Assembly: GCF_006345805.1 (NCBI RefSeq)
Contig: NC_043000.1
Span: forward strand, 21,700,001 to 21,764,000
Direction: 5' to 3'
Length of the DNA: 64,000 bases
DNA from: Octopus sinensis
Lineage: Eukaryota
In this document: positions 5,957 to 45,302 of the stretch, piece after piece
Layout: each line of letters starts with the position of its first letter
Numbering within the stretch: the first letter of the stretch is position 1
Program-made: the position numbers and the translations under genes
Notes under the pieces: generated by a model
The model's database searches: none
What the model was told of the DNA's origin: nothing
What the model saw: only the letters and a program-made list of their open reading frames with translations

Positions 5957-6412
5957 TCAGATCTGAGTGGCTTTGTCTTTTGATACTATTAAAGATGTTG
6001 TAGATGTAGAAGCATTCTCTTTAGCAGGCCGTTGTACATGAGGTTTCTCCCACCTTAAACACAGAGCAACACTTTCCTGAAGAATGGGGGGAGCAGTTTT
6101 GGGACGCTGAAAAGGTGGTTTACACTTGTGACCCAAATCTTGCTCCTTCTTTTGAATGAATTCGTCGTAAGGATTTGCATTACCATGTGAAATTTGATAT
6201 GTAGTTATTCCGTATCGCTGGTTATGTAAAGTTGATGCTGTCACATGAAAAATATTTGGTGGGGGATATTTGTGGTGATCCAGGTGGAACGTCTTTTTAT
6301 AGGTTGAAAGGTAAGGCCACGAAGAATCCAAGTGAGTTGTATCAAATTTCCGTGGCAATACTCCATCATAAGAACAGTAATATGCTGAGTCTATGTGTTT
6401 TCGACCCAAACC
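5957..6412 (-). CDS. TEX36-like: TEX36-like HDNR-domain protein, terminal coding exon 4 (GLGRKHID...KATQI*)
   Basis: Strong acceptor ttttttttctttttttcag|GGTTTGGGTCGA; 151 codons plus TGA; GLGRK matches the TEX36 'GLGRKK' block that follows HDNR. Confidence 0.85.
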   Translation of the reverse strand, partial: GLGRKHIDSAYYCSYDGVLPRKFDTTHLDSSWPYLSTYKKTFHLDHHKYPPPNIFHVTASTLHNQRYGITTYQISHGNANPYDEFIQKKEQDLGHKCKPPFQRPKTAPPILQESVALCLRWEKPHVQRPAKENASTSTTSLIVSKDKATQI

Positions 6413-6739
6413 CTGAAAAAAAGAAAAAAAAACTGCCAAGATATATGATATATATAGCATTTACTTTAAAGACTTGCATTATTGATACATTCTGCTAGGA
6501 AATCTAACCTCTTCAACCAAATATCTTATTTAGAGACATTTTATTTTTGCAGAAGCAACTAGGCAAAATATCATAGGATTGGCAGCATATTTTATTACCA
6601 TTAATATGCTTCCTTTTGTTTTATTGAAAATTCTCTAATACTGGACATATTGTTCATTGTCTGAAAAGATCTTATCAAGTTTGAGAGTAGCTATTAATTT
6701 CAAGTACAGATTACAAAAAAGGGCTACAACAGCCCTGTA

Positions 6740-6990
6740 TTATTTGTCACAGATTGTGTAAGAGGGCTACAATAGTCTTGTGTTATTTGCCACACTTAAA
6801 TGAGTGTAAATGACATTGCATACTATAATATTTATAATTGTAAAAGTAAAGACTCCAAGAAAATTATAGGATGTTGAACATGCACTTAGCTCTGAATAAG
6901 GAGAATACAGGAGGCAGTCGAAAAAGCCAGCTTCTATATATGGCTGAAGCGGGAAGACCAAAAATGGCTTGAAAGTCATAACATGCCGGC
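6740..6990 (+). mobile_element. Decayed C-terminus of a HERO/R2-like non-LTR retrotransposon
   Basis: 6905-6976 translates IQEAVEKASFYIWLKREDQKWLES, resembling the HERO C-terminal 'AAExASxWLWLKRxDxW' motif as I recall it; upstream frame is broken. Confidence 0.45.
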
Positions 6991-8195
6991 AGGAAAATAG
7001 CATCCCTAGGTGAGACAGGCTGACACTGAAGTAGCTTCGCTGACTGACAAGTGATGGTCTCATTTAGAGAATGTGTGGGCTAAGACTATGTGCCCTCCAT
7101 TGGTCAGTTAAAGTTTAGACAGTGTCATGTAACAACGTGCTGGGGCTGCCTGCTGGAGCCTATCACCAGGTATTTAAAGGGAAATTTGACAAGGCAGGCA
7201 TTCGCCCACTGACACTCATTGACATTACATCGAAGAGGCCAGGGAACAGAAGAAAGAAGGAGAAAGAAGACATGCTACTCTACACCAGAGCTGAAGACAT
7301 CTCTGAAAGGAAGCGGGCTACCACGTCAAAACGGTAGAGGAGTAGGGGCCGAAATGGACGTGGTTCCTCCTGATGATGTCTTCAGCTAACTGAATCCTAT
7401 AAAGGAGCTGTTGTGGTAGCAGACCACGAAACATGGTTGAAATTCCCACAGCAGAAACAGTTGTAAGATAATGAAATGATTACATAAATCCCATTCTTTT
7501 GTGAGTCATTGATTAATATTACACTCTGTACTCTCCTGACACTTTTTTACTCAACTAAGACGTAAGTATATTAAGCTCTATCAACTGGATATTAGTAACA
7601 TATTTCTTTATTGTCCACAAGGGGCTAAACATAGAGGGAACAAACAAGGACAGACAAAGGGATTAAGTCAATTACATCGACCCCAGTGCGAAATCATAAA
7701 ATTAAAATAGTCAATTTAAGTCTGTCTCCCATAAAATTATATGATCACAGAATTCTGTTTTGATATATACTTACACATACACACACACACACACACACAT
7801 ACACACACACTCACACACACACACACATACATACACACATACACAATTGTCGTCACCAGTAGAGTAATGTCTCCTCAAAATTTTCAGCTTCAATATTCTA
7901 TCATCATCATCGTCATCATCATCGTTAGCATCATCAATGCTTTATGTCTACTTTTCAGGGTGGCATGACTTGAATAGATTCTTATGATCCCAGTCAGTTT
8001 ACATTTGGAGTAATTGCCTTAAAAGATGAATCAACCATGTCTCACTTCATACTTTCCATTCTTTGGCATGGTTTCTACAGCTGGATGCCCTTCTTAACAA
8101 CCACCACTTTACAAGATGTACTGGGTGTATCTTATCATAGCACCCACACTAGAAAGTCTGCCTTGTCTCCCACAAACTAAAGAGTTCACTCTATT

Positions 8196-8431
8196 TTAAC
8201 CTTTTCAATACCAACCTGGCTGAAACCACTTCTGGCTCTGTAATATAAATGTCTTGTTTTCATAAGTATTGATTTCAAATCTTCCACCAAACCTTAGTGA
8301 CAATTTATGTTCCTAACACTAGTTTAATGATAACTATGTTATTTTACTAAATCCTTTGTTATGCTTAAAATTAAATTGTTATGTTTAAAACACAGAACAT
8401 CTTAACAGAAATATGGTGACAAAAGGGTTAA
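8196..8431. mobile_element. piggyBac-type MITE (TTAA...TTAA)
   Basis: ttaaCCTTTT...AAAAGGGttaa ends; homologous copies at 8447-9151 and 15915-16143. Confidence 0.75.
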
Positions 8432-8446
8432 CAAATGTAGAGGTGT

Positions 8447-8610
8447 TTAACCCTTTCGAATACCAACCCAGCTGAAACCGGCTCTGGCTCTGTAGTACAA
8501 ATGTCTTGTTTTCATAAGTTTTGAATTAAAATCTTCCACCAAACCTTAGTTACAATTTATGTTCCTAATACTAGCTTAAAGATAACTATGTCATTTTACT
8601 AAATTCTTTG

Positions 8611-8657
<47 letters not shown>

Positions 8658-9151
8658 GTTTAATGTCTGCTTTCCATGCTAGCATGGGTTGGACAATTTG
8701 ACTGAGGACTGGTGAACTAGATGGCTGCACCAAGCTCCAATCTGATCTGGCAGAGTTTCTACAGCTGGATGCCCTTCCTAACACCAACCACTCCAAGAGT
8801 GTAGTGGGTGCTTTTACGTGCCACCGGCATGAGGGCCAGTCAGGCAGTACTGGCAACGGCTATGCTCAAATGGTACTTTTTATGTGCCACCTGCACTGGT
8901 AACGACCTCGCTCGAATATTTTTTCGCGTGCCACCAGCAAAAGTGTCAGTAAAGCGACGCAGTAAATGATCGCGCTCGAATGGTGCTTTTTACGTGCCAC
9001 CAGCACAGAACCCAGTTTGTTGCTCTGGGAACAATCACGCTCAGATGGTATTCTTAGCGCTCCACTAGCATGGATGCCAGTCATCAAAATTTAGAATTAA
9101 TTGAAAGAAACACAGAGCATCTTAACAGAAATACGGTAACAAAAGGGTTAA
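8447..9151. mobile_element. piggyBac-type MITE interrupted by an RTE 3'UTR insertion (~8612-9085)
   Basis: ttaaCCCTTT...AAAGGGttaa; MITE sequence resumes after a (CAT)n-tailed element. Confidence 0.75.
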
Positions 9152-9346
9152 GTTGTTTCCATTTGTCCAATACAAATGTTGCTAAAAGTGTTAACAAAAG
9201 GGGTGAATGAGGAAAGTGAACGAGTCTGATAGAGAAACCAAAATCATGGAAAAGTAGGGGAAAGAGGCAATTCAATACCATTGGCCTGAATGAGTATTTT
9301 TTGGTCCTGTTAATTATTTAGAGAATTTAGAATAAAAACATCTTAC

Positions 9347-9424
9347 CTTGCCAAAGATATGAGCATCCCCTTTAAATGCCTTTCGGTTATCATGAATGGA
9401 AAAAACATGTTTTGACGGGGGTTG
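9347..9424 (-). CDS. TEX36-like: TEX36-like coding exon 3 (QPPSKHVFSIHDNRKAFKGDAHIFGK)
   Basis: ttctgttttag|CAA...AAG|gtaaga; 78 nt, phase 0-0; contains FSIHDNR (TEX36 FSVHDNR). Confidence 0.9.
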
Positions 9425-9710
9425 CTAAAACAGAATACAAATAATTTGACTTGAGTAATTAATATAAATTATTTGCTAATTAATTCAAACATCAATACTT
9501 AGGATTCAAGTTCAGTTGTTTATACATAAACTTTGATTATTATTCCAACAATCATATATGTGTGTGTATATGTGTGTGAGTGAGTGTATGTGCATGTGTA
9601 TGTAGGCATGTACATCCCAAAGAGATACACAGACAAAATGGTATGATTACAATCATATTCAACTTTTCCTTTTTCTTCTCTAGGCTCTACTCCTTTTATA
9701 TTTATTCTTC

Positions 9711-9812
9711 ACTCTGATGAAGCTCCGTGTTTCTGATCAGTTTTATTACCAAATATGATAAATATTTTTAGTATATCAATGGCAATACATTGGGAGCAGA
9801 AACAGCTGTTAG
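9711..9812 (+). ncRNA. Penelope-type type I hammerhead ribozyme-like motif with long stem II insert
   Basis: CTGATGA (9714-9720), A, GCTCC...GGAGC, A, GAAAC (9799-9803), palindromic AGCT, then GTT; stem I is only ~2 bp. Confidence 0.4.
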
Positions 9813-9826
9813 ATAGGATGCAATCT

Positions 9827-10365
9827 ATGAGTGAAACTGGTATGAGTGAGACTGGTATGAGTGAGACTGGCATGAGTGAAACTGGTATGAGTGAGACGGG
9901 CATGAGTGAGACTGGTATGAGTGAGACTGGTATGAGTGAGACTGGTATGAGTGAGACTGGTATGAGTGAGACTGGTATGGGTGAGACTGGTATGAGTGAG
10001 ACTGGTATGGGTGAGACTGGTATGAGTGAGATTGGTATGAGTGAGACTGGTATGAGTGAGACTGGTATGAGTGAAACTGGTATGAGTGAGACTGGTATGA
10101 GTAAACTGGTATGAGTGAAACTGGTATGAGTGACATTGATATGAGTGAGACTGGCTTGAGTGAGACTGGTATAAGTGAAACTGGTATGAGTGAGACTGGT
10201 ATGAGTGAGACTGGTATGAGTGAGACTGGTATGAGTGAGATTGGTACGAGTGAGACTGGTACGAGTGAGACAGGTACGAGTGAAACTGGTATGAGTGAAA
10301 CTGGTATGAGTGAGACTGGTATGAGTGAGACTGGTATGAGTGAAACTGGTATGAGTGAGACTGGT
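9827..10365. repeat. 15-bp minisatellite (ATGAGTGAGACTGGT)n, ~36 units
   Basis: Direct reading; one 14-bp unit near 10100 shifts the (MSETG)n frame. Confidence 0.95.
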
Positions 10366-10799
10366 ATAATGAAGAGTAAAATACTAAACTACAAAGTGCA
10401 TTACAATTTTGCATGGAAGATCTTAAGCCAAGCTAATGAGGGTGAGGCAAGCTTTATTAATTAGGTCATGTGGGCACAACACTCTTGAGTATGGACAGCA
10501 CGTTTGCTTATATACCAGCTTAATACATACATGTAAGAAGATTGCAATGCCTGCAGTAATTGTGCATTGTGAAATCTCTGACTAAGATTTCAGATTATCT
10601 AAACTTCATATCTCGCCATGGCTTCCTATCTGACTCATTAAATTCTGACATGAAATTAGCTTTCATTTATTCTGAATACACACTAATCTAATATACTACA
10701 CACAACCATTTAACAACCACCTCAGTCAGTCATTTGTTTCATGATCATGGTTCTTTCATTGCATCATTTTTTTTTGTCTTGTTTTCATTGTTAACACAT

Positions 10800-11580
10800 G
10801 ACCCCCTTTCTCTCTTTCTATCTATTTCTCTCTGTCTTTCTATAGCTATTTTTATCTCTCACTCTTTCTATTTCCCTAACTCTCTTTTTATCTCTCTTAG
10901 TATAGCTCTCTCTCTCTCTCTCTATCCGTCTGTCTGTCTCTCTATCTCTGTCTTTCTCTTTCTTTCTATCTCTCCTTCTCTTTCTATATATCTTTGTCTT
11001 TCTCTCTGTCTATTTCTCTTTCTCTCTTTCAATCTCTATCTCTTTCTATATCTTTCTTTCTATTACCTTCTCTCTACCTGTCTTTCTATATATCTCTGTC
11101 TCTCTCTTTCTATTTCTCTTTCCCTCTCTCTCTCTGTCTCTCTCTCTCTTTCTATCACTCCCTCTCTTTCTATATATCTCTGTTTCTTTCCCTCTCTCTC
11201 TCTCTATTTCTCCTTCTATCTCTCCCTCTCTATATATCACTGTCTCTCTCTTTCTGTTTCTCCTTCTTTCTCTCTCTCTTTCAATCTCTATCTCTTTCTA
11301 TATCTTTCTTTCTATTGCCCTCTCTCTATCTGTCTTTAAACCTTTTTCTATTTTCTCTCCCTGTTTATTTGTGTTCCTTTCTGTCAAAGAGCATAGGCTC
11401 GAAACGTAAAAGACTTTCTCATTTCCTGAGCGTTAAACTAATACATCTCTTTGTTGTTTACACACCCGTCTTCATCTTTTGTTTTTTTGTAAATTCTCAC
11501 TATATCTCTATATCTCTCTCTCTCTATTTCTCTTTCACCCTCTCTCTCTCTCTCTCTCTCTTTCTCTATGCTTTCCTCTA
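10800..11580. repeat. CT-rich low-complexity tract with internal duplications
   Basis: Pyrimidine-rich; the block 'tttcaatctctatctctttctatatctttctttctatt' occurs twice. Confidence 0.9.
11377..11412 (+). ncRNA. Degenerate minimal (Penelope pLTR-type) hammerhead motif
   Basis: CTTT-CTGTCAA-A-GAGC-atag-GCTC-GAAAC-GTA-AAAG: stems I and II pair, ACGT palindromic stem III, core mutated from CTGATGA. Confidence 0.5.
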
Positions 11581-11680
11581 TCAATCCTCTGACCCAATAT
11601 TTTCTCTCACCAAGAAAATGTTTTGATCCAACAAATCATATCAACTTTTTGTATTTGGCTTCCAAATACTCCTGTGTTTT

Positions 11681-11753
11681 GTCCCCATAGCTCAGTTGGT
11701 CAGAGCAAAAATCTAGTAAACTGGAGGTGGATGGTTCAAATCCTCCTGAAGCC
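11681..11753 (+). pseudogene. tRNA-Thr(AGT)-like pseudogene or SINE head
   Basis: D-arm AGCTCAGTTGGTCAGAGC, anticodon loop CT-AGT-AA, T-arm GGTTCAAATCC; acceptor and anticodon stems do not pair. Confidence 0.55.
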
Positions 11754-12712
11754 TGTTTCTCTTTTAAGGTGGTGAGCTGGCAGAACCATTAGCACACCAG
11801 GCAAATTGCTCAGTGGCATTTCGTCTGTCTTTACGTTCTGAGTTCAAATTCTGCCAAGGTCAACTTTGTCTTTCATCCTTTTGGGGTCACTAAAATAAGT
11901 ACCAGTTGAGTACTGGGGTTGATGTAATCAACTTACCCACTACCTGAAATCGCTGACCTTGTGCCAAAATTTGAAACAATTACTAGTTAACCTTTTAACC
12001 AGTTAACTGATCAATTGTATATTCTTTTACTTGTTTCAGTCATTTGACTGTGGCCATGCTTGAGTTGAACAAATCGGCCCTAGGACTTATTCTTTGTAAG
12101 CCTAGTGGTTATTCTATCAGTCTCTTTTGCTGAACCGCTAAGTTACAGGGACATAAACACACCACCATCGATTGTCAAGCGATGTTGGGGGGGACAAACA
12201 CAGACACACAAACATATATGTATACATATATACGACGGGCTTCTTTCAGTTTCCGTCTACCAAATCCACTCACAAGGATTTGGTCGGCCCGAGGCTATAT
12301 ATGATTAATCATTTGGTCAATCAATGAATCCATGTGAGCACCAGTCCTTAGTGTTTGTTGTGGGTTCTCTTTTGACCCCTTCTTCAGTTGGCAATCTCAT
12401 TTCTCCCAAGTTTTGATACTCCAGATAGGTCTGAAACATTTTTCTATGTCTTGTATCATCTTTTGTCTTTAAACCTACAGGTATGTAGATAATGTTTTAG
12501 ATCTTGTCTCTTTATTTGATATATTTTTTGCTTTTGTCAACATATGCCTTGCTTGTTTCAATTCATCCACCAGGATAGTGATTTCATCTTGCACTCAGTG
12601 AGCAATGTTGGAAAAGGTGGCAAGTGAGGAAATTGTACATTGTGTCTTCTTGTGGTGATAACAGCAAAGGTGGAAATTGCCGATGTGTTGGTTAGACAAT
12701 TAAAATTTTTGA

Positions 12713-13118
12713 TAGGCGTGGGAGTGGCTGCGTGGTAAGTAGCTTGCTTACAAACCACATGGTTCCGGGTTCAGTCCCACTGTGTGGCACCTTGGGCAAA
12801 TGTCTTCTACTATAGCCACGGGCTGACCAAAGCCTTGTGAGTGGATTTGGTGGATGGAAACTGAAAGAATCCCGTCGTATATATGTGTATGTATATATAT
12901 CTATGTATGTGTATATGTTTGTGTGTCTGTGTTTGTCCACCCAACATTGCTTGACAACCGATGCTGGTGTGTTTACGACCCCATAGCTTAGCGGTTCGGC
13001 AAAAGAGACCGATAGAATAAGTACTAGGCTTACAAAGAATAAGTCCTGGGGTTGATTTGCTCGACTAAAGGTGGTGCTCCAGCATGGCCACAGTCACATA
13101 ACTGAAACAAGTAAAGAG
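12713..13118 (+). mobile_element. tRNA/CORE-like SINE family A (probably related to octopus OR SINEs)
   Basis: A-box tggctgcgtggtaa, B-box ggttcagtccc, CORE-like accttgggcaaa, internal (TA/TG)n, tail ...actgaaacaagtaaagag. Other copies at ~12023-12300, 19410-19827, 44438-44870, 59158-59552, 60525-60988 and 61238-61708. Confidence 0.8.
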
Positions 13119-13778
13119 TATGTCTTAATTCTCCTGTTTGATATTGTAGATTTTTTTGTAGATGTTATTGTTTTTACGATTTTTTTTCATTTGTTTTGCT
13201 GTTGTTGTTGTCACCACTGTTGTTATTGCTGTTGTTGTTGTTGTCACCGCTGTTGTTGTTGTTGTCACCACTGTTGTTATTGCTGTTGTTGTTGCTTCAG
13301 CCAGCACTGGCTGTGGCACTGTTGCTGGTAGTGTTGGTCTGAGATAACAGTTTGAAAGCTGGATCAAAACTTTTGTTTTCCTGTCACCTTGCTATTTGTT
13401 GAAAGATTCAATGCTATGATTTTAAAGAAGAAAATGCAATTCCAGATGCTGAAGGGCTAAAATTGAATGAAGCTAACATCACAAAAGGTTTGTCAGTTCA
13501 TTAACAATATGGTACAACAAAAAAAAAATATGAATAAACCCCTTTGAAACAAACCAAATTGAACAAAATCAATTTGAGGTTTCAATTGTGTGCCATTTCT
13601 TATAATAATAATAGCAACAACAACAACAACAGCAAAAAAAACAACAATAATAATAATGGTTAATAATATAACAAATAATGATAATAATGGTTTGTTTTAT
13701 TTGCCACCGGGCAAGGAGGAGGAGGAGGAGAAGAAGAAGTGTGTGTGCGTGTATGTGTGTGTGTTTGTGTGTGTGTTT

Positions 13779-13819
<41 letters not shown>

Positions 13820-14244
13820 TTTGTCGCCCACCATCACTTGACAACTGGTGTTGGTTTCCTTGTCTTCCCATAGCTTAGCAGTTTGGCAATAGAGACTGAC
13901 AAAATAAGTGCCGGGCCTTAAAATTAAAGTATTGGGATTGATTTGTTCCACTAAAACCCTTCCAGGCAGTGCTCCAGCTGAGCCTCACACCAATGACTGA
14001 AACAAATAAACAATAAAAAAGACAAAAAGAGATGTTGTGTACATGCAATCTCTTACAAGAAGCAGATCTTTCTATAAAAGTTTCCTTAGTTTAGCTTAGA
14101 AAGCAAGCTTGCAAGGAATTCTCTTACAGGAATTCTACTTGTCACGGGGTTTTGTTAATTAACCCAACCCAGATACATTATTTATTCAAAACACACAATT
14201 TCATTTATAACAAAATGCTTTGGAAATAATTCACTTTATGTTAC

Positions 14245-14361
14245 CGTTACTCTCCACATGAATTTGTTTGGTGGAAGAGGTTTGGCTAGTTGCCGATATA
14301 AAGTATTTACATCATTCCGAGACTCAGCGATTTTGGTATAACCATGGAAACCAGAAGGAAA
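14245..14361 (-). CDS. TEX36-like: TEX36-like coding exon 2 (FPSGFHGYTKIAESRNDVNTLYRQLAKPLPPNKFMWRVT)
   Basis: ttcttttttatttag|TTT...ACG|gtaaca; 117 nt open, phase 0-0; W|FP and KPLPP parallel TEX36 'WFPHIG' and 'KLPP'. Confidence 0.8.
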
Positions 14362-14898
14362 CTAAATAAAAAAGAAATAAAGAAAGAGACTGATGATGCA
14401 TGTAGAAAAACAAAACACAACTGAAATTATATGACAGGTAACACTGTTTAACATGATTTTGTCCTTGGGTAGCAACTGTAATTTTCTATCTGCAGACCCC
14501 TTGAAACTGTGAGAAATGGCTAATATTTCCTTCAAACTTTGCTTTTGTTACATTTGTTCAAGCCCCAAACAATCCCTCTCATGGCTATGATGCTCCCCCA
14601 CTGATCCTGCTCACGATCAGAGATGCACATATTGTCAGCCTCTGAGGGACATGCTCAAGTGGTTACGGTCAAATAACTGGCAAGCAAATCTGTAGTATTG
14701 GGCGGGATATTTGCTATAATGATATTTCTGCTTCAGCAACTCAGTGCTGAATCTGTCTGAAACGTAATGGAAAAATAGGTCAGTTTCAAACCATTGATGA
14801 CCAGGTCACAAAAGCAAAGGGAATAGTAGTCATTTCTTTTGATTTCTGGATAAAAGCAAATAAGAAATAACACTTACTGACCAAAGACAAAAAAAAAT

Positions 14899-15427
14899 GG
14901 ATCTTTACCTTTTGACCGACAGATTTAAAAAGTAATTTTTTGTAACTAAACACTTTCAAACTTCAGACACTGGCAGAATGTGTCATATAAAACATCTTTT
15001 ACTCTTACTATCAGTGGTGTATTTTTCGTTTGTCACTGTTATTTATGACAACCCTAATCCTAAAACACTAACCCTAACCCTAAAACCCTAACCCCAAAAC
15101 CCTAACCCTAACACCCTAAAACCTTAAAACCAGTACAAACGCTCGAACAATGTCATAAATAACAGTGACAAACGAAAAATAAACCGCTGATAGTTGTTGA
15201 CAAACAACGGCAGTAATTTTATTCAGCTGAATACATGTCATTGATTAGTTGAAATTACCGAAATACAAGAACTTTAACGTGAAATAACTTCGTAAATGTA
15301 AGTTTTCCTCAAAAATGCTAAGAGTAAAAGATGTTTTATATGACACATTCTACCAGTGGCCAGAGTTTGAAAGTGTTTAGTTACAAAAAATTATTTTTTA
15401 AATCTGTAGGTCAAAAGGTGAAGATCC
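14899..15427. mobile_element. MITE with ~110-bp terminal inverted repeats and a nested inverted-repeat element
   Basis: 14899-15007 is the reverse complement of 15319-15427; inner arms 15008-15050 and 15151-15193 flank (CCCTAA)-like repeats. Confidence 0.75.
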
Positions 15428-15599
15428 AAAAAAATTTTAATGTTGTTATACAGTGTAATTCAAGGATAACTGGATTGAAGAAATGGTTTGCAGTTGGGTT
15501 TTTTGTCATTGGTTTATGATATTGCAGAGACAATAATTCAACCACTTCTGCTGTGTCTGGGCTTTTCCAGAAGCAAATACCTAGTCCCAAGTATACTTA

Positions 15600-15800
15600 C
15601 CACTTCTCCACTCATGAATATGTTCAGATCATCCATGTAGCTGCAGAAGATGCCAGATATTGGTCAAGTCTGGTAAATATATATTCGAATGAATTACTCC
15701 TGCACACCTTCCCCAAACAAATTCCACTTTCTCTGTTAATCTGACTTTGATTCCACAGAACCTCTTATGTGTTCATAGTCTGCATTGAGTACACTGTATG
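15600..15800 (-). mobile_element. Possible decayed Penelope-like reverse transcriptase fragment
   Basis: Minus frames give NRESGICLGK...EYIFTRLDQYL and, after a frameshift, GIFCSYMDDL (YxDD-like). Confidence 0.3.
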
Positions 15801-15914
15801 GGAGTTCTACCTTCACCTTGTCTACGTGTAAAACAGGGCCATTTACCTGAAGGGATTAGTGTGCAGTCTTGTTTTCCAGCTAATTAGAGTTTTAGTCTTT
15901 GGCAAATTAAAACT

Positions 15915-16143
15915 TTAACCCTTTTGTTACCAACCCGGCTGAAACCGCCTCCGGTTTTGTAGTACAAATGCCTTGTTTTCATAAGTTTTAAATTAAAATC
16001 TTCCACCAAACCTTAGTCACAGTTTATGCTCCTAACACTAGCTTAATGATAACTAAGTTATTTTACTAAATTCTTTGTTATATTTAAAGTAATTGAAAGA
16101 AACACAGAGCACCTCAAAATAAATACAGTAATGAAAGGGTTAA
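15915..16143. mobile_element. piggyBac-type MITE
   Basis: ttaaCCCTTT...AAAGGGttaa; homologous to 8196-8431. Confidence 0.8.
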
Positions 16144-17006
16144 GCAGAAATAGTCTATTCTATGGTCAAAGGAAAATTTGTGAAATTGCTTTTTTTTTAA
16201 TCATTTTATCTTTTTTACTTGTTTCAGTTATTGGTCATGCTGGGACACCAGCTTAAAGAGTCTAGTCAAACAAATCAACACTAGTTGTCAAGTAGTGACG
16301 AGAGACAAACATGGAATCACACACACACACACACACACACACAAGGAGATAAACACAGGGGGGACAAACAAAGACAGGCAAAGAGATTAAGTCAATTACA
16401 TCAACCCCAGTGCATCACTGGTACTTAATTTATTGACCACGAAAGGATGAAAGGTAAAGTCGACCTCGGCAGAATTTGAACTCAGAACGTAATGGCAGAT
16501 GAAACACTGCTAAGCATTTCATCCGGCATGCTAACGTTTCTGCCAGCTCACCGCCTTCAAGTAGTGATGAGTGCTTTCACACAGTTTCTGTCTGCCATTC
16601 ACAAGGCATTGGTTGGGCAAAGATTATTATAACTGAGAGCACTCGACATGCAAAGTAAATTTCAAAGTCATGAGGTGTAGTTTGACGGACAAAGTCATGA
16701 GGTGTAGTTTGACGGACATGTCAAGAGCAGAAGATAACAGACATGTTAGTCTGGTCAGCAATAGGGAGATCCTTTATCTACCAATCCCTATTAAAAAGCA
16801 AGAGCTTCAAGCTGGTATTTTATTCCTCTTCCATCATCATCATCATCATCTCTGTCATTTGATATCTGCTTTCCATACTGGCATGGGTTGGACAGTCTGA
16901 CAGGAACTGGAAAACCAGAGGACTGCATCAAATTTCAGTGCCTGCTTTGGCTTTGATTTTACACCTGGATGCCCTTCATAATGCCAACCACTTTACAGCA
17001 TGTTCT

Positions 17007-17431
17007 CAGTGCTGGATTAACCATTAAGCAAAATAAGCACATGCTTAGGGCATCAAGGGAAGGAGGGGGCACCACAGAAATGGTAAATGGTTTACAGCAC
17101 AAAAGAAATTACTTTAAACTTGCTAAAATAATATTCGGGATGCCTTTATCTCTACTAAATATAGGTTCAGATGTGTTACCTAAGATTAATTTTGAAGATC
17201 TTATCAAAGACTTTGTAATTCAGAAAAGTAGGAGGAAACTTTTCAAATATAAATAAAGCGGAAGTATACAAAAATAAACATTATTTTCCCTCTTAATGTT
17301 TTGTTTCATTTTGAAAAATAAAAAAAATATTTATGGTTTGTTATTGTATATATTTTAAATTACATTATCTTTATGGGGGTACCAAAATCTTTTAAGTGCT
17401 TAAGGCCTTGATGGGTCTTAATCCAGCCCTG
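17007..17431 (+). mobile_element. Internally deleted hAT transposon
   Basis: TIRs CAGTGCTGGATTAA / TTAATCCAGCCCTG; retains C-terminal dimerization-like text LSLLNIGSDVLPKINFEDLIKDFVIQKSRRKLF; TSD not clear. Confidence 0.6.
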
Positions 17432-18339
17432 AGTATACTGGGTCCTTTTTACATAGCCCCAACATGCCATGAATGTCTGTGTTACATAAAAAGTAACTCA
17501 CAAGACAAGACCTCTCCACTGAGATGAAGAGTAATCAATATTTCTAATTTTTTTTTTACATTATCTTTGTTATTTCTAAAACATCCAAACAAAAAGGAAC
17601 CCATCAAGTAAACCTACAGGTACCTACTGTCCTCGTGTCACAGAAAGGGGATTCCACAGCATGTTTGCATTTCCCTTTAATGCAGGAGAGGGGGCCAGCA
17701 TAGAGCCTGCAGGTTGGATCCAGCTCTCAGCAACGGCTAGACCAACCCTGGTGATATGAATGATGTTGAGAGGTTTTGTAACTGAAACAGGGCAAGCTTT
17801 CTATCAGGCATTAATCTCTCTTTTAAGGCACATTAAGAACTTTCAAAAACTGCATGCATTTATCTGGACAATTTCTATCTCTATTTTCAGACTGAGAATT
17901 CTGTTTAACAGAACTGTATGTGAATGAATTTTTCCACACACCTTTGCACCCAACCTAACACTTCGTACTTTTGACCCCTTTATCCATTTACGCTGGCCTG
18001 TATTATAAATAGGGTTTTCAGAAATAATTGTCCTTAATCAGCTCATGAGATCTAGTTTTTGCCTCAATGCAGCTCACAAAGCCAAATGAGTTTGATGCTT
18101 CCACTTCAAAGTATTTGGTTAAGCAAGTCCAATGAGAAGTCAAATAAGCCGTTTTCACTTACTCCATTTGAACTCAGTCTTTTGACAATTTTTCTGCTAC
18201 CTCCATCTTCGTGTCTAGTATAGCTGAAAAGGCTAACAGTCTTTTCCTTCAAATAATTGTACAAGGTCTGATGAAATGTATTGGGACTGGTGCTATAAAA
18301 AAAGAAAACTGCAACACATGTCAGTTCAGCATTTAATCT

Positions 18340-19330
18340 TTGAAGTAGTTCCCTTCTGAAGCCACACAATTTATCCAGCATCGTTCCTATTGATGGAAGC
18401 CTTCCTGGAACTCCTTTTCTGGGATAGTGAGTGGCTGCCTTGCCACATTCTCTTGGATTTCCTCAATGTCTTAAAATCTTGTTCCTTTCAAGTGGAATTT
18501 GCTTTTTGGAAAGAGGAAAAGTGGCAAGAGGCAAGATCTTATTTCTTATTTCTTTATTGCCCACAAGGGGCTAAACATAGAGGGAGCAAACAAGGACAGA
18601 CAAAGGGATTAATTCGATTATATCGACCCCAGTGCATAACTGGTACTTAATTTATCGACTCCAAAAGGATGAAAGGCAAAGTTGACCTCGGCAGAATTTG
18701 AACTCAGAACGTAATGGCAAATGAAACACTGCTAAGCATTTTGTCCGGCGTGCTAACGTTTCTGCCAGCTCGCAAGAGGCAAGATCTGGGGGATATGGTG
18801 GTTGTCGGTCCTGGGAAATGTGTTTGGCCCAAAACTCCTGCACAGGCTGCACTGAATGTCCAGGTGCATTGTCATAGTGGAGTTGCCACTCGCCAGACAC
18901 ATCCAATTCTGTCATTTTCTGACAAACAGCATCCTACAAACACTGCAACAGATCACAGTGGTACTCCTTGTTTACTGTCCGACCAGGTGGAGTAATACTC
19001 ATGATGAACAATGTGATGCTTTCATCAGTTCTGCTGGTTGTGGGTCTCCCAGAACATGTGGTGTCGCTGGCAACATTTTGTCAACCATCTTGGAAGCATT
19101 TGAACCACTTGTCCAGTTGTGTCCAGTTCATACATTCTTCTCTATACACTTTCGGCAACTTTGTATAGGTCTCTGCACAGATATCACCAAGCAAAATTCC
19201 ATGCAGATTTTTCTCAATGAGCTGTTCACACGCCACACACTTTACTTCCAAGAACTGCTACAAACAATGGAAATGAGCAAGAGTTCAAGGTTAATCTGTA
19301 CCAAGCAACTTCTACACTCTGCTTACTTTA
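18340..19330 (-). mobile_element. Mariner transposase remnant split by a SINE
   Basis: Minus frames: LHYDNAPGH, QPPYPPDLASC, LKGTRF.DIEEIQENVARQ, CVASEGNYFE; stops and frameshifts present. Confidence 0.75.
18540..18771 (-). mobile_element. SINE family B with 16-bp TSD
   Basis: gcaagaggcaagatct at 18524-18539 and 18772-18787. Confidence 0.85.
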
Positions 19331-19608
19331 ACTCTGTTACCATAGCAACAGTCTTGACACCTTTTGATCAGACTTCATATCTCTATCTACTCTTTACTTT
19401 TTTACTTGTCTCAGTCATTTGACTGTGGCCATGCTGGAGCACCGCCTTTAGTCGAGCAAATCGACCCCAGGACTTATTCTTTGTAAGCCTAGTACTTATT
19501 CTATCGGGTTTTTTTTGCCGAACCGCTAAGTTACAGGGACATAAATACACCAGCATCGGTTGTCAAGTAATGTTGGGTGGAGGGACAAACACAGACACAC
19601 AAACATAT

Positions 19609-19659
<51 letters not shown>

Positions 19660-21780
19660 TACGACAGGCTTCTTTCAGTTTCCGTGTACCGAATCCACTC
19701 ACAAGGCTTTGGTTGGCCCAAGGCTATAGTAGAAGTCACTTGCCCAAGGTGCCATGCAGTGGGACTGAACCTGAAACCATGTGGTTGGTAAGCAAGCTAC
19801 TTACCACACAGCCACTCCTACGCCTATATGTAGATAAATTCTTGTGAAACATCTACAAGATTGGTGGATATTAGGAAACTTTTCCTTAGTTTTAATTGTT
19901 GTCTTTCACAGTATTCACATAATGGATGCCTGCTTTTGTTTTTATGTTTTGATATCAATAAAAGATGGAAACATGGAAGATAATAGCATATAGTTTGAAT
20001 TAGTAGGAAGCATGTCATTTAAACTCTTAGAAGGTCACAGAGACAAGATGAGATATTGGTTACATCCAAGTTTTTTGAGGGGTCTCAATGTGACAGAAAA
20101 TTTAAAACCAGAAATCTCCTTTGTATAGACATGCCATGATCGTTACCGCGTCGCCTTACTAGCACACTTGTGGTGGTGGCATGTGAAATATCCGAGCGAG
20201 GTTGTTGCCAGTGCCGCTGGACTGGCTCCTGTGCAGGTGACAAATAAAAAGCACCATTTTGGTGTGGCTGTTGCCAGTTCCACCAAACTGGCCCTCGTGC
20301 CGGTGGCACGTAAAAGCACCCACTACACTCTCAGAGTGGTTGGCGTTAGAAAGGGCATCAAGCTGTAGAAACTCTGCTGATCAGATTGGAGTTTGGTTCG
20401 CCAGACCTCAGTCAAATCGTCCAACCCATGCTAGCATGGAAAGCGGACATAAAATGATGATGATGATGATGATGGCTGATGGAATGAGGTGAGTGTAAGA
20501 AAATTGAAAAATCAAAATCTTAGCTCCACTGAATCTAAATATAAATTATAGGAAAATTTCTAACAGTTAAATTAACTAACAATTTATCTTCTCAATAGAA
20601 TATCTGAACAATATCAGCCACAATATGTCTTAAGACAATATAGCATAATAAAATTTATTTCTTTTTACCTTTAAGGTGTGTGTTTGTGTGCGCACACGCA
20701 AGCGTGTCCACACACACATACACACGCACACACTTGTATTTCTACCTTGTTGATGTTGTCTAAACCCGCTCAAGAAAACTTTATTTTTTTTTTTTTGTTG
20801 TTGAAAATCTTCGCCAAAGAAATTTTCAAAGCAAAAACATTAATGCACACAGGCGTAGCTGTGTGGTAAAAATTTGCTTTGCAACCATATGATTCAGTTC
20901 CACTGCGGGGCATCTTGAGCAAGCGTCTTTTACGGCTGCCTTAGGATGACTAAAATCTTGTCAACGGATTTGGTAGACAAAAACTGAAAGAAGCTCGTCG
21001 TACACACATGCACGCGCGCGCATGCGTACGTGTCTCTGTGTGTGTCTGTGTTTGCCCTCCGCAACCGCTAGACAATCCGTGCTGGTTTGTTTACATCCCT
21101 GTAACTTAGCGATTGGACAAAACAGACCGATAGAATATGTACCAGGCTTGAAGAAAAAATGCACTGGGATCGATTCATTCAACTGAAACTCTTTATGTTA
21201 GTGTCCCAGCATGGACACAGTCCAATGACCAAAACAATTTAAAGAAAAAAAGATAGGATATTACAGATATATTTATGTAACGGAAATTCCTTCGAATATT
21301 AGACTACTCATTGACAAAAGAATAAGAATTCTTTCGTCAATGGGTCATCTATTTTGCGAGTGTATGTCTTTGGAATACTTCTTGTTTCCGTCTATATTTT
21401 TATATGGTTGTCATAAATACATGTAAATCACAAAGAATTTAAACGCAATAATTGTAAACGTGAAAAAGAGGTTCTGGAAAGGTTTGAGAAGTGGTCCCAG
21501 AAGAAAAGGGAGGACAGTAAGCTGACAATGTGGTCTTTTACACCCATTCATGCTCCAATTCTTGTGTCTTCATTGCCATAAGGACATTTTTATATCAATG
21601 TTAGGCCCATACAAGCCATCTCAGAACATGAATAAACTCAATGGAATCAAATTCTTGAGAGATACCTACGACGAGGACATGTATGTATAAAATATATTTA
21701 TAAAGCAAAAAAGTTTTCTTTAAAAGAATGCTTTGGTTAAACAAAACTCTTCTATCAAAACGACTGTTATTTCAACTTAC

Positions 21781-21807
21781 CCAGGTACCTGTTATATTGC
21801 TTGTCAT
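21781..21807 (-). CDS. TEX36-like: TEX36-like first coding exon (MTSNITGTW)
   Basis: ATG ACA AGC AAT ATA ACA GGT ACC TGG|gtaagt; phase 0 joins FPSG to give G-x-W-F-P as in TEX36 'GRWFP'; in-frame TGA upstream with no intervening ATG. Confidence 0.7.
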
Positions 21808-22027: not shown

Positions 22028-22054
22028 TGTTTACATTGCTGCTGCCATGGCAAC
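22028..22054. promoter_or_regulatory. Forkhead site plus RFX X-box upstream of the TEX36-like gene
   Basis: TGTTTAC (22028-22034) and GCTGCCATGGCAAC (22041-22054; 13/14 to the palindrome GTTGCCATGGCAAC), ~235 bp 5' of the ATG. Confidence 0.7.
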
Positions 22055-22427: not shown

Positions 22428-23560
22428 CATCATTATCATCGTTTAACGTCTACTTTCCATGCTGGCATGAGTTGGACGGTTTGACTGAAGGCTGACAAGC
22501 CAGGAGGCTTACAGCAGGCTCCAGTCTGATCTGGCAAGGTTTCTACTGCTGGATGCTCTTCCTAACGCCAACCACTCTGGGTGTACAGTGGCTGCTTTTT
22601 ACGTGCCACCAGCACGGGGGAGGGGGCAGTCTGGCGGTACTGGCATTGACCACGCTCCAATGCTGCTTTTTACATACCACTGGCACAGAAGCCAGTCAGG
22701 CAGCACTGACATCAACCACACATGAATGGTGCTTTTTATATGCCACCTGCATGGGAGCCATTTAGCCCTGATCCTAAAGACACTAACTACTAACATATGT
22801 TGTGGGTTGCATTCTTCACCTGGGAAAGTTTTGCCTTTATAAGCAGCCATCTTTCCCATTTCCTGGCAAGAATGTAGTTAATCTGACTAGTGTGTCCACC
22901 AGACTGGTAAGTGAACAGTTGACTGGCAGATTTCCTGAAGTTAGTATTAAAGAGCTTAAAATCATTTGCATCACAGAACTCCAGCAACCTGGTTCCCTCC
23001 TCGTTGCGGGAACCAAATCTGTAGCCACCATGAACACCATGGAAGCTCTCTGGATGTTGTCCAGCATACCCGTTGAATTCACCAGCCACAAAGAGAAGGT
23101 CTCAGTCATTCATCAATGAGGTAGTCTGCAAGAGGATGTCATAAAATCGGTCCTTCTGTTCATCAGGTAGCCCCGGCTGAGGGGCATAGGCCGAGATAAT
23201 GGTTGCTAATCCATGTTGCAGCACTAATCTAAGCTTAAGCATTCTGTCACAGACTCTGACTACCTCAATTACCTTATCAACCCATTCCTCTGCAAGAAGG
23301 ATACCCATGACCCCAACCCCATCAATGTTTCCTACCCAGAAAATCTTATATCTGTGTTCTTTGCCTGTGAGGAACCTAGCAGAACTTCCTCTCCACCTTA
23401 CTTCTTGGATGCAACACAAATCAACATGTCTCTGTTCAAGTATCTTGACAATCTCACCGGACCTACCTTTCATTGTGCCACCATTAAGTGTGCCAATTCT
23501 GAGGGTGTAGAAAGTGTGGGCCAGCGAGACCCTGGGATGGGGGATGCATCTGAAAAGAAA
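22428..23560 (-). mobile_element. Internally deleted RTE LINE: AP endonuclease region fused to 3'UTR/tail
   Basis: APE motifs TLRIGTLN, LCCIQEVRW, IISAYAPQ, GEFNG, INYIL, PQHMLVV; after 'RAKWLP' the sequence jumps to the 3'UTR and (GAT)n tail. Confidence 0.8.
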
Positions 23561-23599
23561 GCTCGCATTTGGCATATATATATATATATATACAGGGAT

Positions 23600-25500
23600 A
23601 CAGGGTAGGCCATAATGATGGGACACATTTTAAATGCTAGTATCTTGGATTATAAAAATGACAGGGTGCCAAATATATTTATTACGTAACTGATATACAG
23701 GAATTCAGCATATTATCAAAGACTTCTCTATTTTCTACAGGTAGTTGATGTTGGTGACCCTCATAATGTTGTGGACTCCAAAAGAAATTGCATACATGGT
23801 GAAAGCATACTTCACCAGCCAAAGATCCATCGTAACAGCCCAAAGAAAATTCCAGCAGTGTTTTGGGAAGCAACAGGAACCATCCCAAAAGGTGATCTGC
23901 ATGCTGTTACAAACTTTTGTAAGATAGACAACACCAAGAAAAAAAAATCCCTAGATGAACCTCAGATATATTATTTCTTTATTGCCCACAAGGGGCTAAA
24001 CATAGAGGGGACAAACAAGGACAGACAAGGAGATTAAGTCGATTACATCGACAGTACGTAACTGGTACTTAATTTATTGACCCCGGAAGGATGAAAGGCA
24101 AAGTCAACCTCAGTGGAATTTGAACTCAGAACGTAACGGCAGGTGAAATACTGCTAAGCATTTTGCCCACCATGCTAACGTTTCTGTCAGCTTGCTGCCT
24201 CAGATACTTTGTAGTGCAGAGAACTGCCAGAGTGTGAGGAATGCTATTAAGTCTCCCAAAGCCCACACATTGATTGGCTCAACTGTTGAATATTTCAGAT
24301 ACCAGTGTCAAAAGGATTTTTAAACAAGACCTACTCTGGTATCCATATTAGATATAATTAGGGCAGCAATTGCTCCCACCAAATAAGATGCAAAGAAATA
24401 GTTTTAGTGGTTGGTTTGTCAATATATGCAGAGAGGAAGAAGACTTTATCTATCACTTACTCATTACTCACATCAGATGAAGTTCATTTTAACCTTTTTG
24501 GCTATGTTGATAAGCAAAATTGTAGGTTTTGCAGTAGTGAAAGTCCTCAAATCATGCATGAAAGGTCTTTGCACTGTGAGAGGGCTACAGAGTGGTGTGC
24601 AGTGACTTATGCATGTGTGACTGGTCCTTGCTTTTTTGAAGACAAACATGGTGCAGCTGTAATGGTAACTGCTGAACACTACAACCATATATTGAAGACC
24701 TTGTTCTTTCCCAAGTTACAAAGACTTATCTCTTTATTGCTCTCAGGGGGCTAAAGATAGAGGGGACAAACAAGGACAGACAACGGGATTAAGTCAATTA
24801 CATCGACCCCAGAGCATAACTGGTACTTAATTTATCAACCCCGAAAGGATGAAAGGCAAAGTCAACCTCAGCAGAAATTGAACTCAGAACGTAAAGACAT
24901 ACGAAATACCATTAAGCATTTTGCCTGACGTGCTAACGATTCTGCCAGCTCGCCGCCTTACAAGTTACATAAATGTGGATGCAACAAGATGGTGCAACTA
25001 GTCATAGAGTGTGACTATCAATGACAATTCATCAAGAACAATTCCCAGAACATCTCATTTTGAGATTTGGTGATATCTGCTGGCCATCCATATCATCATA
25101 TCTAACCTCAGTGGACTACTTTCTGTGGGATAGGGTCAGGGCTGGCTCAAGGTACTGGCAACACAGGCAGTTTCCTGGGGCATCATGTGCTGGGGTATGC
25201 CAAGGAGGGCATGACAAAGACAAGGAAATTCCCACAACCATCAGCTTGTACACACCAAAGTTCAGCTTTGTGCCTGGGGTGCCAGCAACCCTGGGCTAGC
25301 TCTGGGTTAGAGTATACACATGAAGGCCTCACACAGCAGTGGAACTTAAAACAAAGCAACTGTAGTGAGATTGCAGCCATTCCAGTTGAAATGCTAAGCT
25401 GCAGTGTGCTTGATATGAGAAAGTGAGCTCATGAATATTCCTATTTGCTATTTAATCTCTTAGGCTTAATTGAAACAGCTGTAAGGTACTATGTTTGATT
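23600..25500 (+). mobile_element. Tc1/mariner transposase remnant with two SINE-B insertions (~23973-24200, ~24727-24960)
   Basis: N-terminal HTH-like WTPKEIAYMVKAYF; SDEVHFNLFGYVDKQNCR; GPCFFED; GDICWPS...DYFLW; EIAAIPVEML. Confidence 0.75.
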
Positions 25501-25544
25501 TTTGCCGATAATGAATTAGTAGGTGTAGGAGTGGCTGTGTGACA

Positions 25545-26405
25545 CCAGGGGCATCCTGTCTTGAATTCCTCCGTTATTGCTTGGAGGACTATGATAAATA
25601 GGAGGGGGTTGAGGACTGAACCTTGGTGGACCCCAACCTCTACCCGGAATTCTTAGCTGTACTCGTTGCCAACCCTCACCTTACTAACAGCGTCCCAGTA
25701 CATGGCTCATACAGCTCTTGCTAACCATTCATCTATCCCTAGTTTCCACCAGATAAGGGATCGGGGGACCCTGTCAAAGGCTTTCTCCATGTCAACGAAA
25801 GCCAGGTACAGAGATTTATCTTTGGCTAGGTATTTATTCCTGCAGCTGTCTCACCAGAAATATGGCATCAGTAGTGCTTTTTCCTGGCACGAAACCAAAC
25901 TGCATCTCATCCAAGTTGACTCTCTCCTTAATCAGTTGGGCTATGACCCTCTCCGTAACCTTCATTACCTGATCCAACAGCTTGATACCTCTGTAATTAT
26001 TTGTATCTAGGGTGTCACCTTTACCTTTGTAGCAGTTGACTATTATGCTGCTACACCAGTCATTGGGTATGACTCCTTCGTGTATCACCTGGTTAACTAT
26101 ACAGGTGACTAGGCCATAGCCGACACTGCCAGATATTTTGAGCATCTCTGCAGTAATTCCTGATGGGCCTGGGGCTTTCCCTGTCTTCATGCTTCTGATT
26201 GCCTTAACTACCAAAGAACTGTCAACTCGGATAGCTGGTCCCTCTGTTGGGTCGACATTCAGCAGACTCTCTTTATCCCATTCATTTTCTTTATTCAGCA
26301 ACCTTTCATAGTGACATCTCCAAACCTCTCTCTTTGCATCCTCATTTAGCGCAAGTGAACCATCATCCATGTGAACACATTTCTCTCCTACCACATCATG
26401 ATTCT
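25545..26405 (-). mobile_element. RTE LINE reverse transcriptase fragment
   Basis: MKTGKAPGPSG, PNDWCSSIIVNCYKGKGD, NYRGIKLL, QFGFVPGKSTTDAIF, AFVDMEKAFDRV, GVHQGSVLNPLLF. Confidence 0.9.
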
Positions 26406-26573
26406 CTCTCACACAATAGAATAAGTACTAGGCTTACAAAGAATAAGTCCTGGGGTTGATTTACTCGACTAAAGGTGGTGCTCCAGCATGGCCACAGTCA
26501 CATGACTGACACAAGTAAAAGAGTAAATACTATATCTCCATTTTCTTACTTTCCTATGAAGGATCATAAACCA

Positions 26574-28745: not shown

Positions 28746-29176
28746 ATATATTATTAATAGTTAGGGAAGGTCGCCAAAAACCCGACCATGCAACAGGATG
28801 TATTGGATTCCATGAGAAACGTCACAAGTGACCTGACTATACATACATGCATACAAAGAGAGAGTGGACGAGAGAGAGAGTGGATGAGAGAGTGTGCATG
28901 TGTGTGTGTTGGTTAGGAATTAAGATAAAAATAGTGACAGCTTGCTTCACTTTGTGACATTACACCCTTTTCATTCATGACGAGCTGTTCAATAATGAAT
29001 TTTAAAATGGCAGCCAGAAGAAAATAATCGTCCAACTATTTTCTGAAATGATTGAATAGAAGAAACTAAGGTGTGCTACGTCTGAGTTGTCTAAATTACT
29101 TATATATTGGGTCAGAGATTAAGATAAAAGACTGCAATAGAAATATGGGAAGATAAAAATAGTCATAGACAGATAA

Positions 29177-31520: not shown

Positions 31521-31831
31521 AGGCAGGTAGACAAACAATTAGATGGCATTTCCTATTGGGAAGAAAATAACTTATTAAAATTTAACAGAAAAACAAATAC
31601 TTATTCATAAGTTTTCTTAAAAGAAATTTGAAAAACAGAAGTTTATCATTTTCTTACTGATTGTAATAAACATTTAAAAAAAAAAGGAATATATCATTTC
31701 TGAAAGTAGTAGCTTCATGCCTTAAAAGATTGTAATGATAAATATGTGTGTGTCTGTGACAGACAGACAGAGGGCAGGAGCAAGAGAGATGAGTGGCTGC
31801 AAACAAAACTGGGAATTACATTATAGATAGA

Positions 31832-44183: not shown

Positions 44184-44595
44184 AATGACTTCTGCAGCTC
44201 TGAACTTCCCTATATACATATGCTCTTTAACCAAACCCCTCTGACATTCCCATCTACAATTCTCTTCCTCTCTTTCTTACAGAGACCCATCTTCCAGATG
44301 CTAATATTGCTTTCAGATTTTGGCACAAGGCCAGCAATTTCAGGGGAAGGGGTAAGTCGATTACATTGAAACCCAGTACTCAACTGATACTTATTTTATT
44401 GACCCCAAAAGGATAAAATATATACATATGTATATATAGGCGTAGAAGTGGCTGTGTGGTAAGAAGCTTGCTTAAAAACCACATGGTTCCAGGTTCAGTC
44501 CCACTGCATGGCACCTTGGGCAAGTGTCTTCTACTATAGCCTCGGGCCGACTAAAGCCTTGTGAGTGGATTTGGCAGATGGAAACTGAAAGAAGC

Positions 44596-44650
<55 letters not shown>

Positions 44651-45302
44651 GTATGTGTATGTATGCATTTGTGTGTCTGTGTTTGTCCCCACAACATCGC
44701 TTGACAACCTATGCTGGTATGTTTACGTCCCTGTAACTTAGCAGTTCAGCAAAAGAGACTGATAGAATAAGTACAAGGCTTACAAAGAATAAGTCCTGGG
44801 GTCGATTTGCTTGACTAAAGGCGGTACTCCAGCATGGCCACAGTCAAATGACTGAAACAAGTAAACGAGTAATATATATCCAGCGTTTGGCCAAGCCTGA
44901 ACTTTCTTTCTTGGTCTGGCCATTATCTGTGCAACATCAATATTCCTCTCTGTGCCTGTGAAATCTTGAATCCCTACCATGAGGCTTCATTTCCACGCAT
45001 GCCAGCTTAAATTAATTTGTCCTTAGTCAAAAGACACCCGTTTGCTTTTATTGCATTTCTGTAACATTGTCCGTGTTTTTTCTGTCCTTGTTTTTGTATA
45101 CATTCACTGCTTTCTTCCAAGGAATCTAATGCTCTTAGCTTAGTTTTTCCTTGGAGCTGACCAGATTGGAGCAATCTTGAGTTTAATTAGCCAAAATTGT
45201 GAAGATATCGGGTACTTGACTGAGGAAAGAAAACTTTGAATGACCAGTCCTTGTTTTCTTTGTATCATCTACCTGGATGTTTTGTGTTCTTGTCCCATTT
45301 TG

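Follow-up and report, generated by a model that had tools for sequence, protein, structure and literature searches.

A 64,000-nucleotide stretch of the genome of Octopus sinensis (hereafter 'the window'; contig NC_043000.1, positions 21,700,001 to 21,764,000) contains, on its minus strand, a gene (LOC115211045) whose four coding exons encode a member of the HDNR protein family. Judged by comparison of sequences, that gene is the O. sinensis ortholog of C3orf84, which is also termed 'ciliary microtubule inner protein 7' (CIMIP7) and which represents one of two HDNR paralog types, the other being TEX36; we count this assignment as established. When the exons are joined (27 + 117 + 78 + 456 = 678 nucleotides; Table 1), they form a reading frame that extends from an ATG to a TGA codon and specifies 225 amino acids, and the resulting translation corresponds exactly to the peptide that a first-pass annotation of the window had proposed. 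The splicing pattern described in that annotation was likewise recovered by direct reading of the junctions: the introns open with the donors GTAAGT, GTAACA and GTAAGA, each of them closes with an acceptor AG behind a pyrimidine-rich tract (TTTTTTATTTAG, ATTCTGTTTTAG and TCTTTTTTTCAG), and every intron is in phase 0, because the length of each exon is divisible by three. Of the four exons, the last alone stands out as a long open reading frame (ORF; 5957..6460, 167 aa), the three that precede it being too short to enter an ORF list, as had also been remarked.

Table 1. Coding exons and candidate control elements of the octopus CIMIP7 gene, numbered from the first nucleotide of the window.
Feature	Position	Strand	Description
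Candidate RFX X-box GTTGCCATGGCAGC	22041..22054	-	Agrees with the palindrome GTTGCCATGGCAAC at 13 of 14 positions; lies 234-247 bp before the ATG
Forkhead core GTAAACA	22028..22034	-	Conforms to RYMAAYA; on the gene strand, follows the X-box after 6 bp
Coding exon 1	21781..21807	-	27 nt; MTSNITGTW; ATG at 21807-21805; donor GTAAGT
Coding exon 2	14245..14361	-	117 nt; FPSGFHG...KPLPPNKFMWRVT; phase 0 at both ends
Coding exon 3	9347..9424	-	78 nt; QPPSKHVFSIHDNRKAFKGDAHIFGK; holds the HDNR motif
Coding exon 4	5957..6412	-	456 nt including the TGA stop codon (5959-5957); GLGRK, STYKKTF, TTYQISH, ESVALCLRW
Candidate poly(A) signal AATAAA	5832..5837	-	120 nt past the stop codon; of little weight, the DNA being AT-rich

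The 225-residue product is 100% identical, over its full length, to RefSeq entry XP_029635775.1 ('C3orf84-like isoform X1', Octopus sinensis, LOC115211045), and the annotated span of that gene (15,851 bp on CM016862.1, assembly GCA_006345805.1) coincides with positions 5957-21807 of the window. The corresponding 90% cluster also contains a second O. sinensis isoform (X2, 182 aa), a protein from O. bimaculoides (XP_014781310.1, 226 aa) and a model from O. vulgaris; many molluscan orthologs, those of the latter two species included, are annotated. A word-indexed search that started from the octopus protein returned no match beyond that protein itself. Neither the gene nor its exon structure or family assignment is new; RefSeq contains all of these for three Octopus species. 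The description of the gene as hidden among repeats is accurate for its introns, which are indeed repeat-rich, but the gene itself is a catalogued one with annotated molluscan orthologs. The match to the HDNR family, the full-length identity to the RefSeq protein and the presence of the same structure in O. bimaculoides establish that the four-exon chain is not the product of chance.

Membership in the HDNR family, which had been proposed from the motifs of the peptide, was confirmed with the corresponding Pfam profile (PF15115): the octopus protein attains 39.1 bits, above the gathering cut-off of 27 (E 1.2e-9), with residues 5-82 corresponding to profile positions 13-96 of 182. The two most recognizable elements of the domain, FSIHDNR and GLGRK, occupy residues 56-62 and 75-79, respectively. 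In an alignment with 26 relatives, F56, D60, N61, G75 and G77 do not vary, and at least 90% conservation is seen at H59 and R62.

The first-pass annotation further described the gene as resembling TEX36, on the basis of motif order, and therefore raised the possibility that it is a molluscan ortholog of that vertebrate protein, equipped with a lineage-specific C-terminus. Elements of that description are sound: the two HDNR types have in common a core of approximately 60-85 residues (GxWFP, K-LPP, FSxHDNR and GLGRK, in that order), chimpanzee TEX36 aligns with the octopus protein in BLASTP (31.6 bits, E 4e-6, 32% identity over 87 aa), and published work refers to a Crassostrea gigas gene as Tex36 (PMC8945556). 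When 1.84 billion representative proteins were searched exhaustively with phmmer (E <= 1e-3), 88 relatives were recovered, among which no TEX36 protein was found, names having been looked up for part of them; every relative with a retrievable name is called either C3orf84 or 'ciliary microtubule inner protein 7'. The named relatives include the molluscs Patella vulgata, Liolophura sinensis and Babylonia areolata ('CIMIP7-like') as well as a wide assortment of vertebrates (Latimeria, Anolis, Podarcis, Salvator, Thomomys, Macrotis, Spea, Rhinatrema, lungfish, sturgeon and a human C3orf84 isoform), and a Lingula protein is also present, in a record that carries no name. All 88 display the N-terminal block that is typical of C3orf84, G[ST]W...G[FY][HY]GH.RS..R.[DE]...YR..AKP.PP, and the positions of that region that are invariant across the family (G7, W9, G13, G16, R24, R32, A35, P37 and P40) are all present in the octopus protein.

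A direct comparison of the two paralog types was made with profile hidden Markov models (HMMs) built from 12 vertebrate CIMIP7 proteins and from 18 TEX36 proteins, the latter drawn from 122 named TEX36 entries that were gathered in a word-indexed search with a human sequence as query. The octopus protein scores 111.6 bits against the CIMIP7 profile, over residues 1-165, as compared to 26.1 bits against the TEX36 profile, over residues 23-83 only; the former score is greater by a factor of four, and the alignment behind it extends over 165 rather than 61 residues. In pairwise comparison, the BLASTP score for a coelacanth (Latimeria) C3orf84-like protein (99 bits, 40% identity over 159 aa) likewise exceeds that for TEX36, which is not the best vertebrate match and to which similarity is confined to the shared HDNR core. 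The octopus protein and CIMIP7 share the same N-terminal module (G-x-W, FPxGFHG, YRxxAKPxPP, FSxHDNR and GLGRK, with an intron immediately after G-x-W), whereas TEX36 lacks the GFHGHFRS...R.D..YR block. Together with the C-terminal motifs and the exon sizes described below, both of which correspond to CIMIP7, and with the name 'C3orf84-like' assigned by NCBI, these observations have already largely refuted orthology to TEX36, and we consider that assignment very improbable; what stands of the original description is membership in the HDNR family and a motif order that resembles that of TEX36.

The first-pass annotation also regarded the C-terminus of the octopus protein as divergent, a view that the alignment of relatives does not bear out. 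Residues up to approximately position 200 align with other members of the family, and three segments, STYKKTF (110-116), TTYQISH (144-150) and ESVALCLRW (187-195), coincide with motifs (STYxxx[FY], T[TS]Y[RQ]Y.H and ESVAxC[LM]xW) that are found in almost all of the 26 aligned proteins. Within them no relative departs from S110, Y112 or Y146, and V189, C192 and W195 show almost no variation. The tail appears divergent only when it is placed beside TEX36, because that protein lacks the STY, TTY and ESVAxCLxW motifs which the octopus protein shares with CIMIP7. The octopus protein departs from other molluscan CIMIP7 proteins in its tail past CLxW, which is shorter, giving a total length of 225 aa as compared to 246-290 aa.

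These C-terminal motifs bear on the function of the family, which had been described in the same annotation as unknown. That description is outdated, since databases now name the vertebrate ortholog 'ciliary microtubule inner protein 7', and since published work has assigned to TEX36 and C3ORF84 the microtubule-binding 'Mn' repeats, for which the minimal unit is [TS][TS]x4[YF], and has noted, as a secondary statement, that sea-urchin TEX36 had been defined as one of the microtubule inner proteins (MIPs) of sperm flagella (PMC10973386). The term 'CIMIP7' itself was not found in the literature searched. The octopus protein contains one exact Mn unit (STYKKTF, a motif so short that it is weak evidence when taken alone) and a second, TTYQISH, that nearly fits the pattern except for its final residue, H; the S-x-Y-x3-[FY] arrangement is retained in 26 of 26 aligned relatives. 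In the possession of short [TS][TS]x4[YF] units separated by non-conserved linkers, and in a predicted extended conformation, the octopus protein resembles the Mn-repeat MIPs (the MAP6/SAXO type, and CFAP95, CFAP107, SPAG8 and SPMIP3/6/9); it differs from them in having neither the NWE seam module nor a long Mn array, and in a second unit that ends in H rather than in Y or F. This likeness is at the level of motifs, and does not demonstrate common descent. The principal corrections to the earlier description are thus that the paralog is CIMIP7, that the C-terminus is conserved within the ortholog group, and that the function of the family is no longer blank in databases.

The exon organization of the gene, which was compared with that of four relatives by mapping each protein to its genomic locus, provides a further line of evidence on the relationship between the two paralogs. 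The coding exons of O. sinensis (27/117/78/456 nt) correspond closely to those of O. bimaculoides (27/117/78/459 nt), of Patella C3orf84 (27/114/78/522 nt) and of Anolis C3orf84 (27/114/78/531 nt), and all introns in these genes are in phase 0. The TEX36 gene of a vole is composed of exons of other lengths (51/132/81/300 nt), again with phase-0 introns throughout, and in all five genes one intron directly follows GxW, a second immediately precedes the exon with FSxHDNR, and the third immediately precedes GLGRK. Molluscs and vertebrates, and both CIMIP7 and TEX36, thus have the three phase-0 intron positions in common; the use of this three-intron structure as a mark of HDNR genes is our own, and not a published definition. 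The identity of positions and phases could be read in favor of orthology to TEX36, with which they are shared; the common positions show that CIMIP7 and TEX36 share an ancestral gene structure, and lend support to the splice model; the exon sizes, with a characteristic pattern of 27, 114-117 and 78 nucleotides followed by a long final exon, place the octopus gene with CIMIP7 and not with TEX36.

The same observations raise a question of duplication that refines, rather than opposes, the assignment to CIMIP7. In particular, TEX36 might be a duplicate that is restricted to vertebrates, in which case the octopus gene would be the single pro-ortholog of both CIMIP7 and TEX36, with CIMIP7 having kept the ancestral form and TEX36 having diverged rapidly to a testis-specific one. 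The identical intron positions in the two paralogs, and the CIMIP7-like character of all invertebrate relatives, argue for this arrangement, as does the restriction of the named TEX36 hits to mammals and squamates; that search was limited by its word index, so that silence from other groups does not amount to evidence of absence. We regard the chances of this history as evenly balanced.

An additional property of the locus is found upstream of the start codon, where a candidate RFX X-box, GTTGCCATGGCAGC, is followed by a forkhead core, the pair together spanning positions -247 to -221. RFX-bound X-boxes and forkhead sites of the FOXJ1 type are characteristic of motile-cilia genes throughout the animals. 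Searches with strict consensus patterns for the X-box (of the type GTNRCC N0-3 RGYAAC) gave no match; a looser pattern revealed the site, which was subsequently scored against the 14-nucleotide palindrome, and it departs from the strict consensus by a single base (AGC for AAC). It is the sole site with one mismatch or fewer in the entire 64-kb window, as compared to an expected number of 0.011 (approximately 1e-4 per 500-bp promoter window). The forkhead heptamer is by itself weak evidence, and what counts is its pairing with the X-box. In O. bimaculoides a corresponding X-box, GTTGCCATAGCAGC, is present at -247, with an identical forkhead core (GTAAACA) at the same spacing, and in Patella C3orf84 the sequence ATTGCCATGGCAAT at -136 is followed 3 bp further on by GTCAACA. 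No X-box with two mismatches or fewer was found within 1 kb of the ATG at the Anolis, sturgeon and vole TEX36 loci, where the first exons may lie elsewhere.

Similar to motile-cilia genes controlled by RFX and FOXJ1, the Octopus and Patella genes display a near-palindromic candidate X-box less than 250 bp from the start codon with a putative forkhead site (RYMAAYA) 3-6 bp away. The conserved pair points to motile-cilia regulation, and its most likely reading is expression in ciliated or flagellated cells. When the search is relaxed to two mismatches, three X-box-like sites are present in the window, as compared to 0.18 expected; the additional two, both on the plus strand, are GTTACCATAGCAAC at 19336-19349, in intron 1, and GTTGCCACCGCAAC at 62384-62397.

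The promoter pair in molluscan CIMIP7 genes and the family-wide conservation of introns are the modest additions made by the present analysis; both independently support a role in motile cilia and the common descent of CIMIP7 and TEX36. If they are considered jointly, it can be proposed, more tentatively than the duplication history described above, that the three-intron HDNR gene structure and its RFX-forkhead promoter both date to the common ancestor of protostomes and deuterostomes, that the octopus gene is a single pro-ortholog, and that TEX36 is a rapidly evolving, testis-restricted vertebrate duplicate. Were that the case, molluscs would retain an ancestral one-gene state in which the function of HDNR proteins as MIPs could be tested free of compensation by a paralog, and such compensation might also account for the fertility of Tex36 knockout mice.

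The assignment of the gene to CIMIP7 and the properties of its promoter suggest a mechanism of action in which the octopus protein would be produced, under control of the RFX/FOXJ1 type, by cells that assemble motile cilia or sperm flagella. In such cells it may be deployed as an extended and largely unstructured chain along the luminal wall of axonemal doublet microtubules, where its N-terminal HDNR module and its Mn-type units (STYKKTF and TTYQISH) would contact tubulin and, as with other MIPs, those contacts would stabilize the doublet against bending stress. An AlphaFold2 model of the monomer, calculated with the family alignment, is mostly extended, with low confidence (predicted local distance difference test score 59.7; predicted template-modeling score 0.24); such a model is compatible with a chain that becomes ordered on the microtubule lattice, and proves nothing about it. 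The explanation as a whole, comprising both orthology to CIMIP7 and a role as a ciliary microtubule inner protein, is in our judgment likely to be correct.

Several observations weigh against that explanation. The N-terminus of the octopus protein reads GYTKIAESR where the family consensus is GHFRSKxR, and contains one extra residue. The low confidence of the structural model means that it contributes no positive evidence. Searches of the Protein Data Bank, conducted by phmmer with the octopus protein, chimpanzee TEX36, a rodent CIMIP7 and a 410-aa relative (P0035) and also with a profile of 26 members, returned no HDNR chain, the only matches being noise (E > 0.3); a location within the lumen is for that reason one that we infer, from a database name (NCBI/UniProt) and one secondary statement (PMC10973386). 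Mice in which Tex36 has been knocked out are fertile, with sperm of normal motility (PMC7401030), which indicates that the loss of a family member may produce a subtle phenotype. Finally, comparing O. sinensis with O. bimaculoides gives a ratio of nonsynonymous to synonymous substitution (dN/dS) of 0.55, a value only moderately below 1, and that comparison has little power (dS 0.11, 47 differences).

The structural points among these bear on an alternative in which the protein is a conserved HDNR protein that acts outside the axoneme lumen, for example as a cytoplasmic or centriolar microtubule-associated protein, or in an unrelated spermatogenic role. Such a location would agree with the solved structures searched, in which no HDNR chain appears, with a predicted structure that is uninformative, and with the fact that MAP6/SAXO proteins and MDM1, a centriolar protein, also possess Mn-type units (PMC10973386). 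The curated name 'ciliary microtubule inner protein 7', the conservation of the X-box and forkhead pair in two molluscan lineages and the secondary report of sea-urchin TEX36 as a sperm-flagella MIP all argue instead for the axoneme, and we consider a non-luminal protein to be unlikely.

The dN/dS value, in turn, bears on whether the gene might be a decaying, non-functional copy or an artefact of gene prediction, as do the deviating 5' ends of RefSeq isoform X2 and the O. vulgaris model. The reading frame and consensus splice sites are intact in both O. sinensis and O. bimaculoides, family-invariant residues are retained over the whole length of the protein, the promoter motif is conserved, and the 40% identity with the coelacanth protein shows long-term constraint despite weak constraint between the two Octopus species. 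A pseudogene or prediction artefact was rejected on these grounds, and we judge it exceedingly improbable.

The annotated models of the CIMIP7 gene vary at their 5' ends in two respects. RefSeq isoform X2 (XP_036357781.1, 182 aa) begins at M44, within exon 2 (14245-14361, minus strand), which implies an alternative 5' exon or promoter that removes the GxWFPxGFHG block. In intron 1, at positions 15601-15636 on the minus strand, the sequence ATGGATGATCTGAACATATTCATGAGTGGAGAAGTG, followed by gtaagt, encodes MDDLNIFMSGEV and corresponds to the exon with which the coding sequence of the O. vulgaris model CAI9721995.1 begins. That exon would splice to exon 3 in phase 0, bypassing the conserved N-terminal module, and could be either a real alternative first exon or an artefact of the prediction program.

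The introns of the gene hold many micro- and minisatellites as well as interspersed repeats, and the remainder of the window is similarly populated. Intron 2 contains an array of 36 copies of a 15-mer (9826-10367); other simple arrays include a tandem repeat of 475 bp in five copies (670-2867), a CT-rich array (10809-11335), a short telomere-like AACCCT run (15070-15119) and arrays with a periodicity of 8-12 bp (29096-31550), the last of which yield long spurious ORFs. An interspersed family of approximately 230 nt is represented by 8-9 copies with 66-86% identity to a reference copy (at 4891, 16323, 18545, 23967, 24725, 42378, 53360 and 62916), two of which are located inside intron 1. A second family is found beside TA/CA microsatellites (12712-13115, 44436-44865, 60524-60983 and 61238-61705), and a recurring pseudo-ORF overlaps or adjoins the last three of those copies and appears again at 19560-19847 and 59318-59734. 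Degenerate fragments of retrotransposons of the type lacking long terminal repeats (non-LTR) are present at 22790-26412 (minus strand) and 48138-48548 (plus strand), one of them just upstream of the CIMIP7 promoter region; their ORFs resemble an endonuclease (Exo_endo_phos, 16.4 bits) and a reverse transcriptase (RVT_1, 21.5 bits), both at scores below the Pfam cut-offs. Also within intron 2, an Rfam match to tRNA at 11681-11754 on the plus strand (30.8 bits, as compared to a cut-off of 29), which was not called by ARAGORN, is probably the tRNA-derived head of a short interspersed nuclear element or a tRNA pseudogene.

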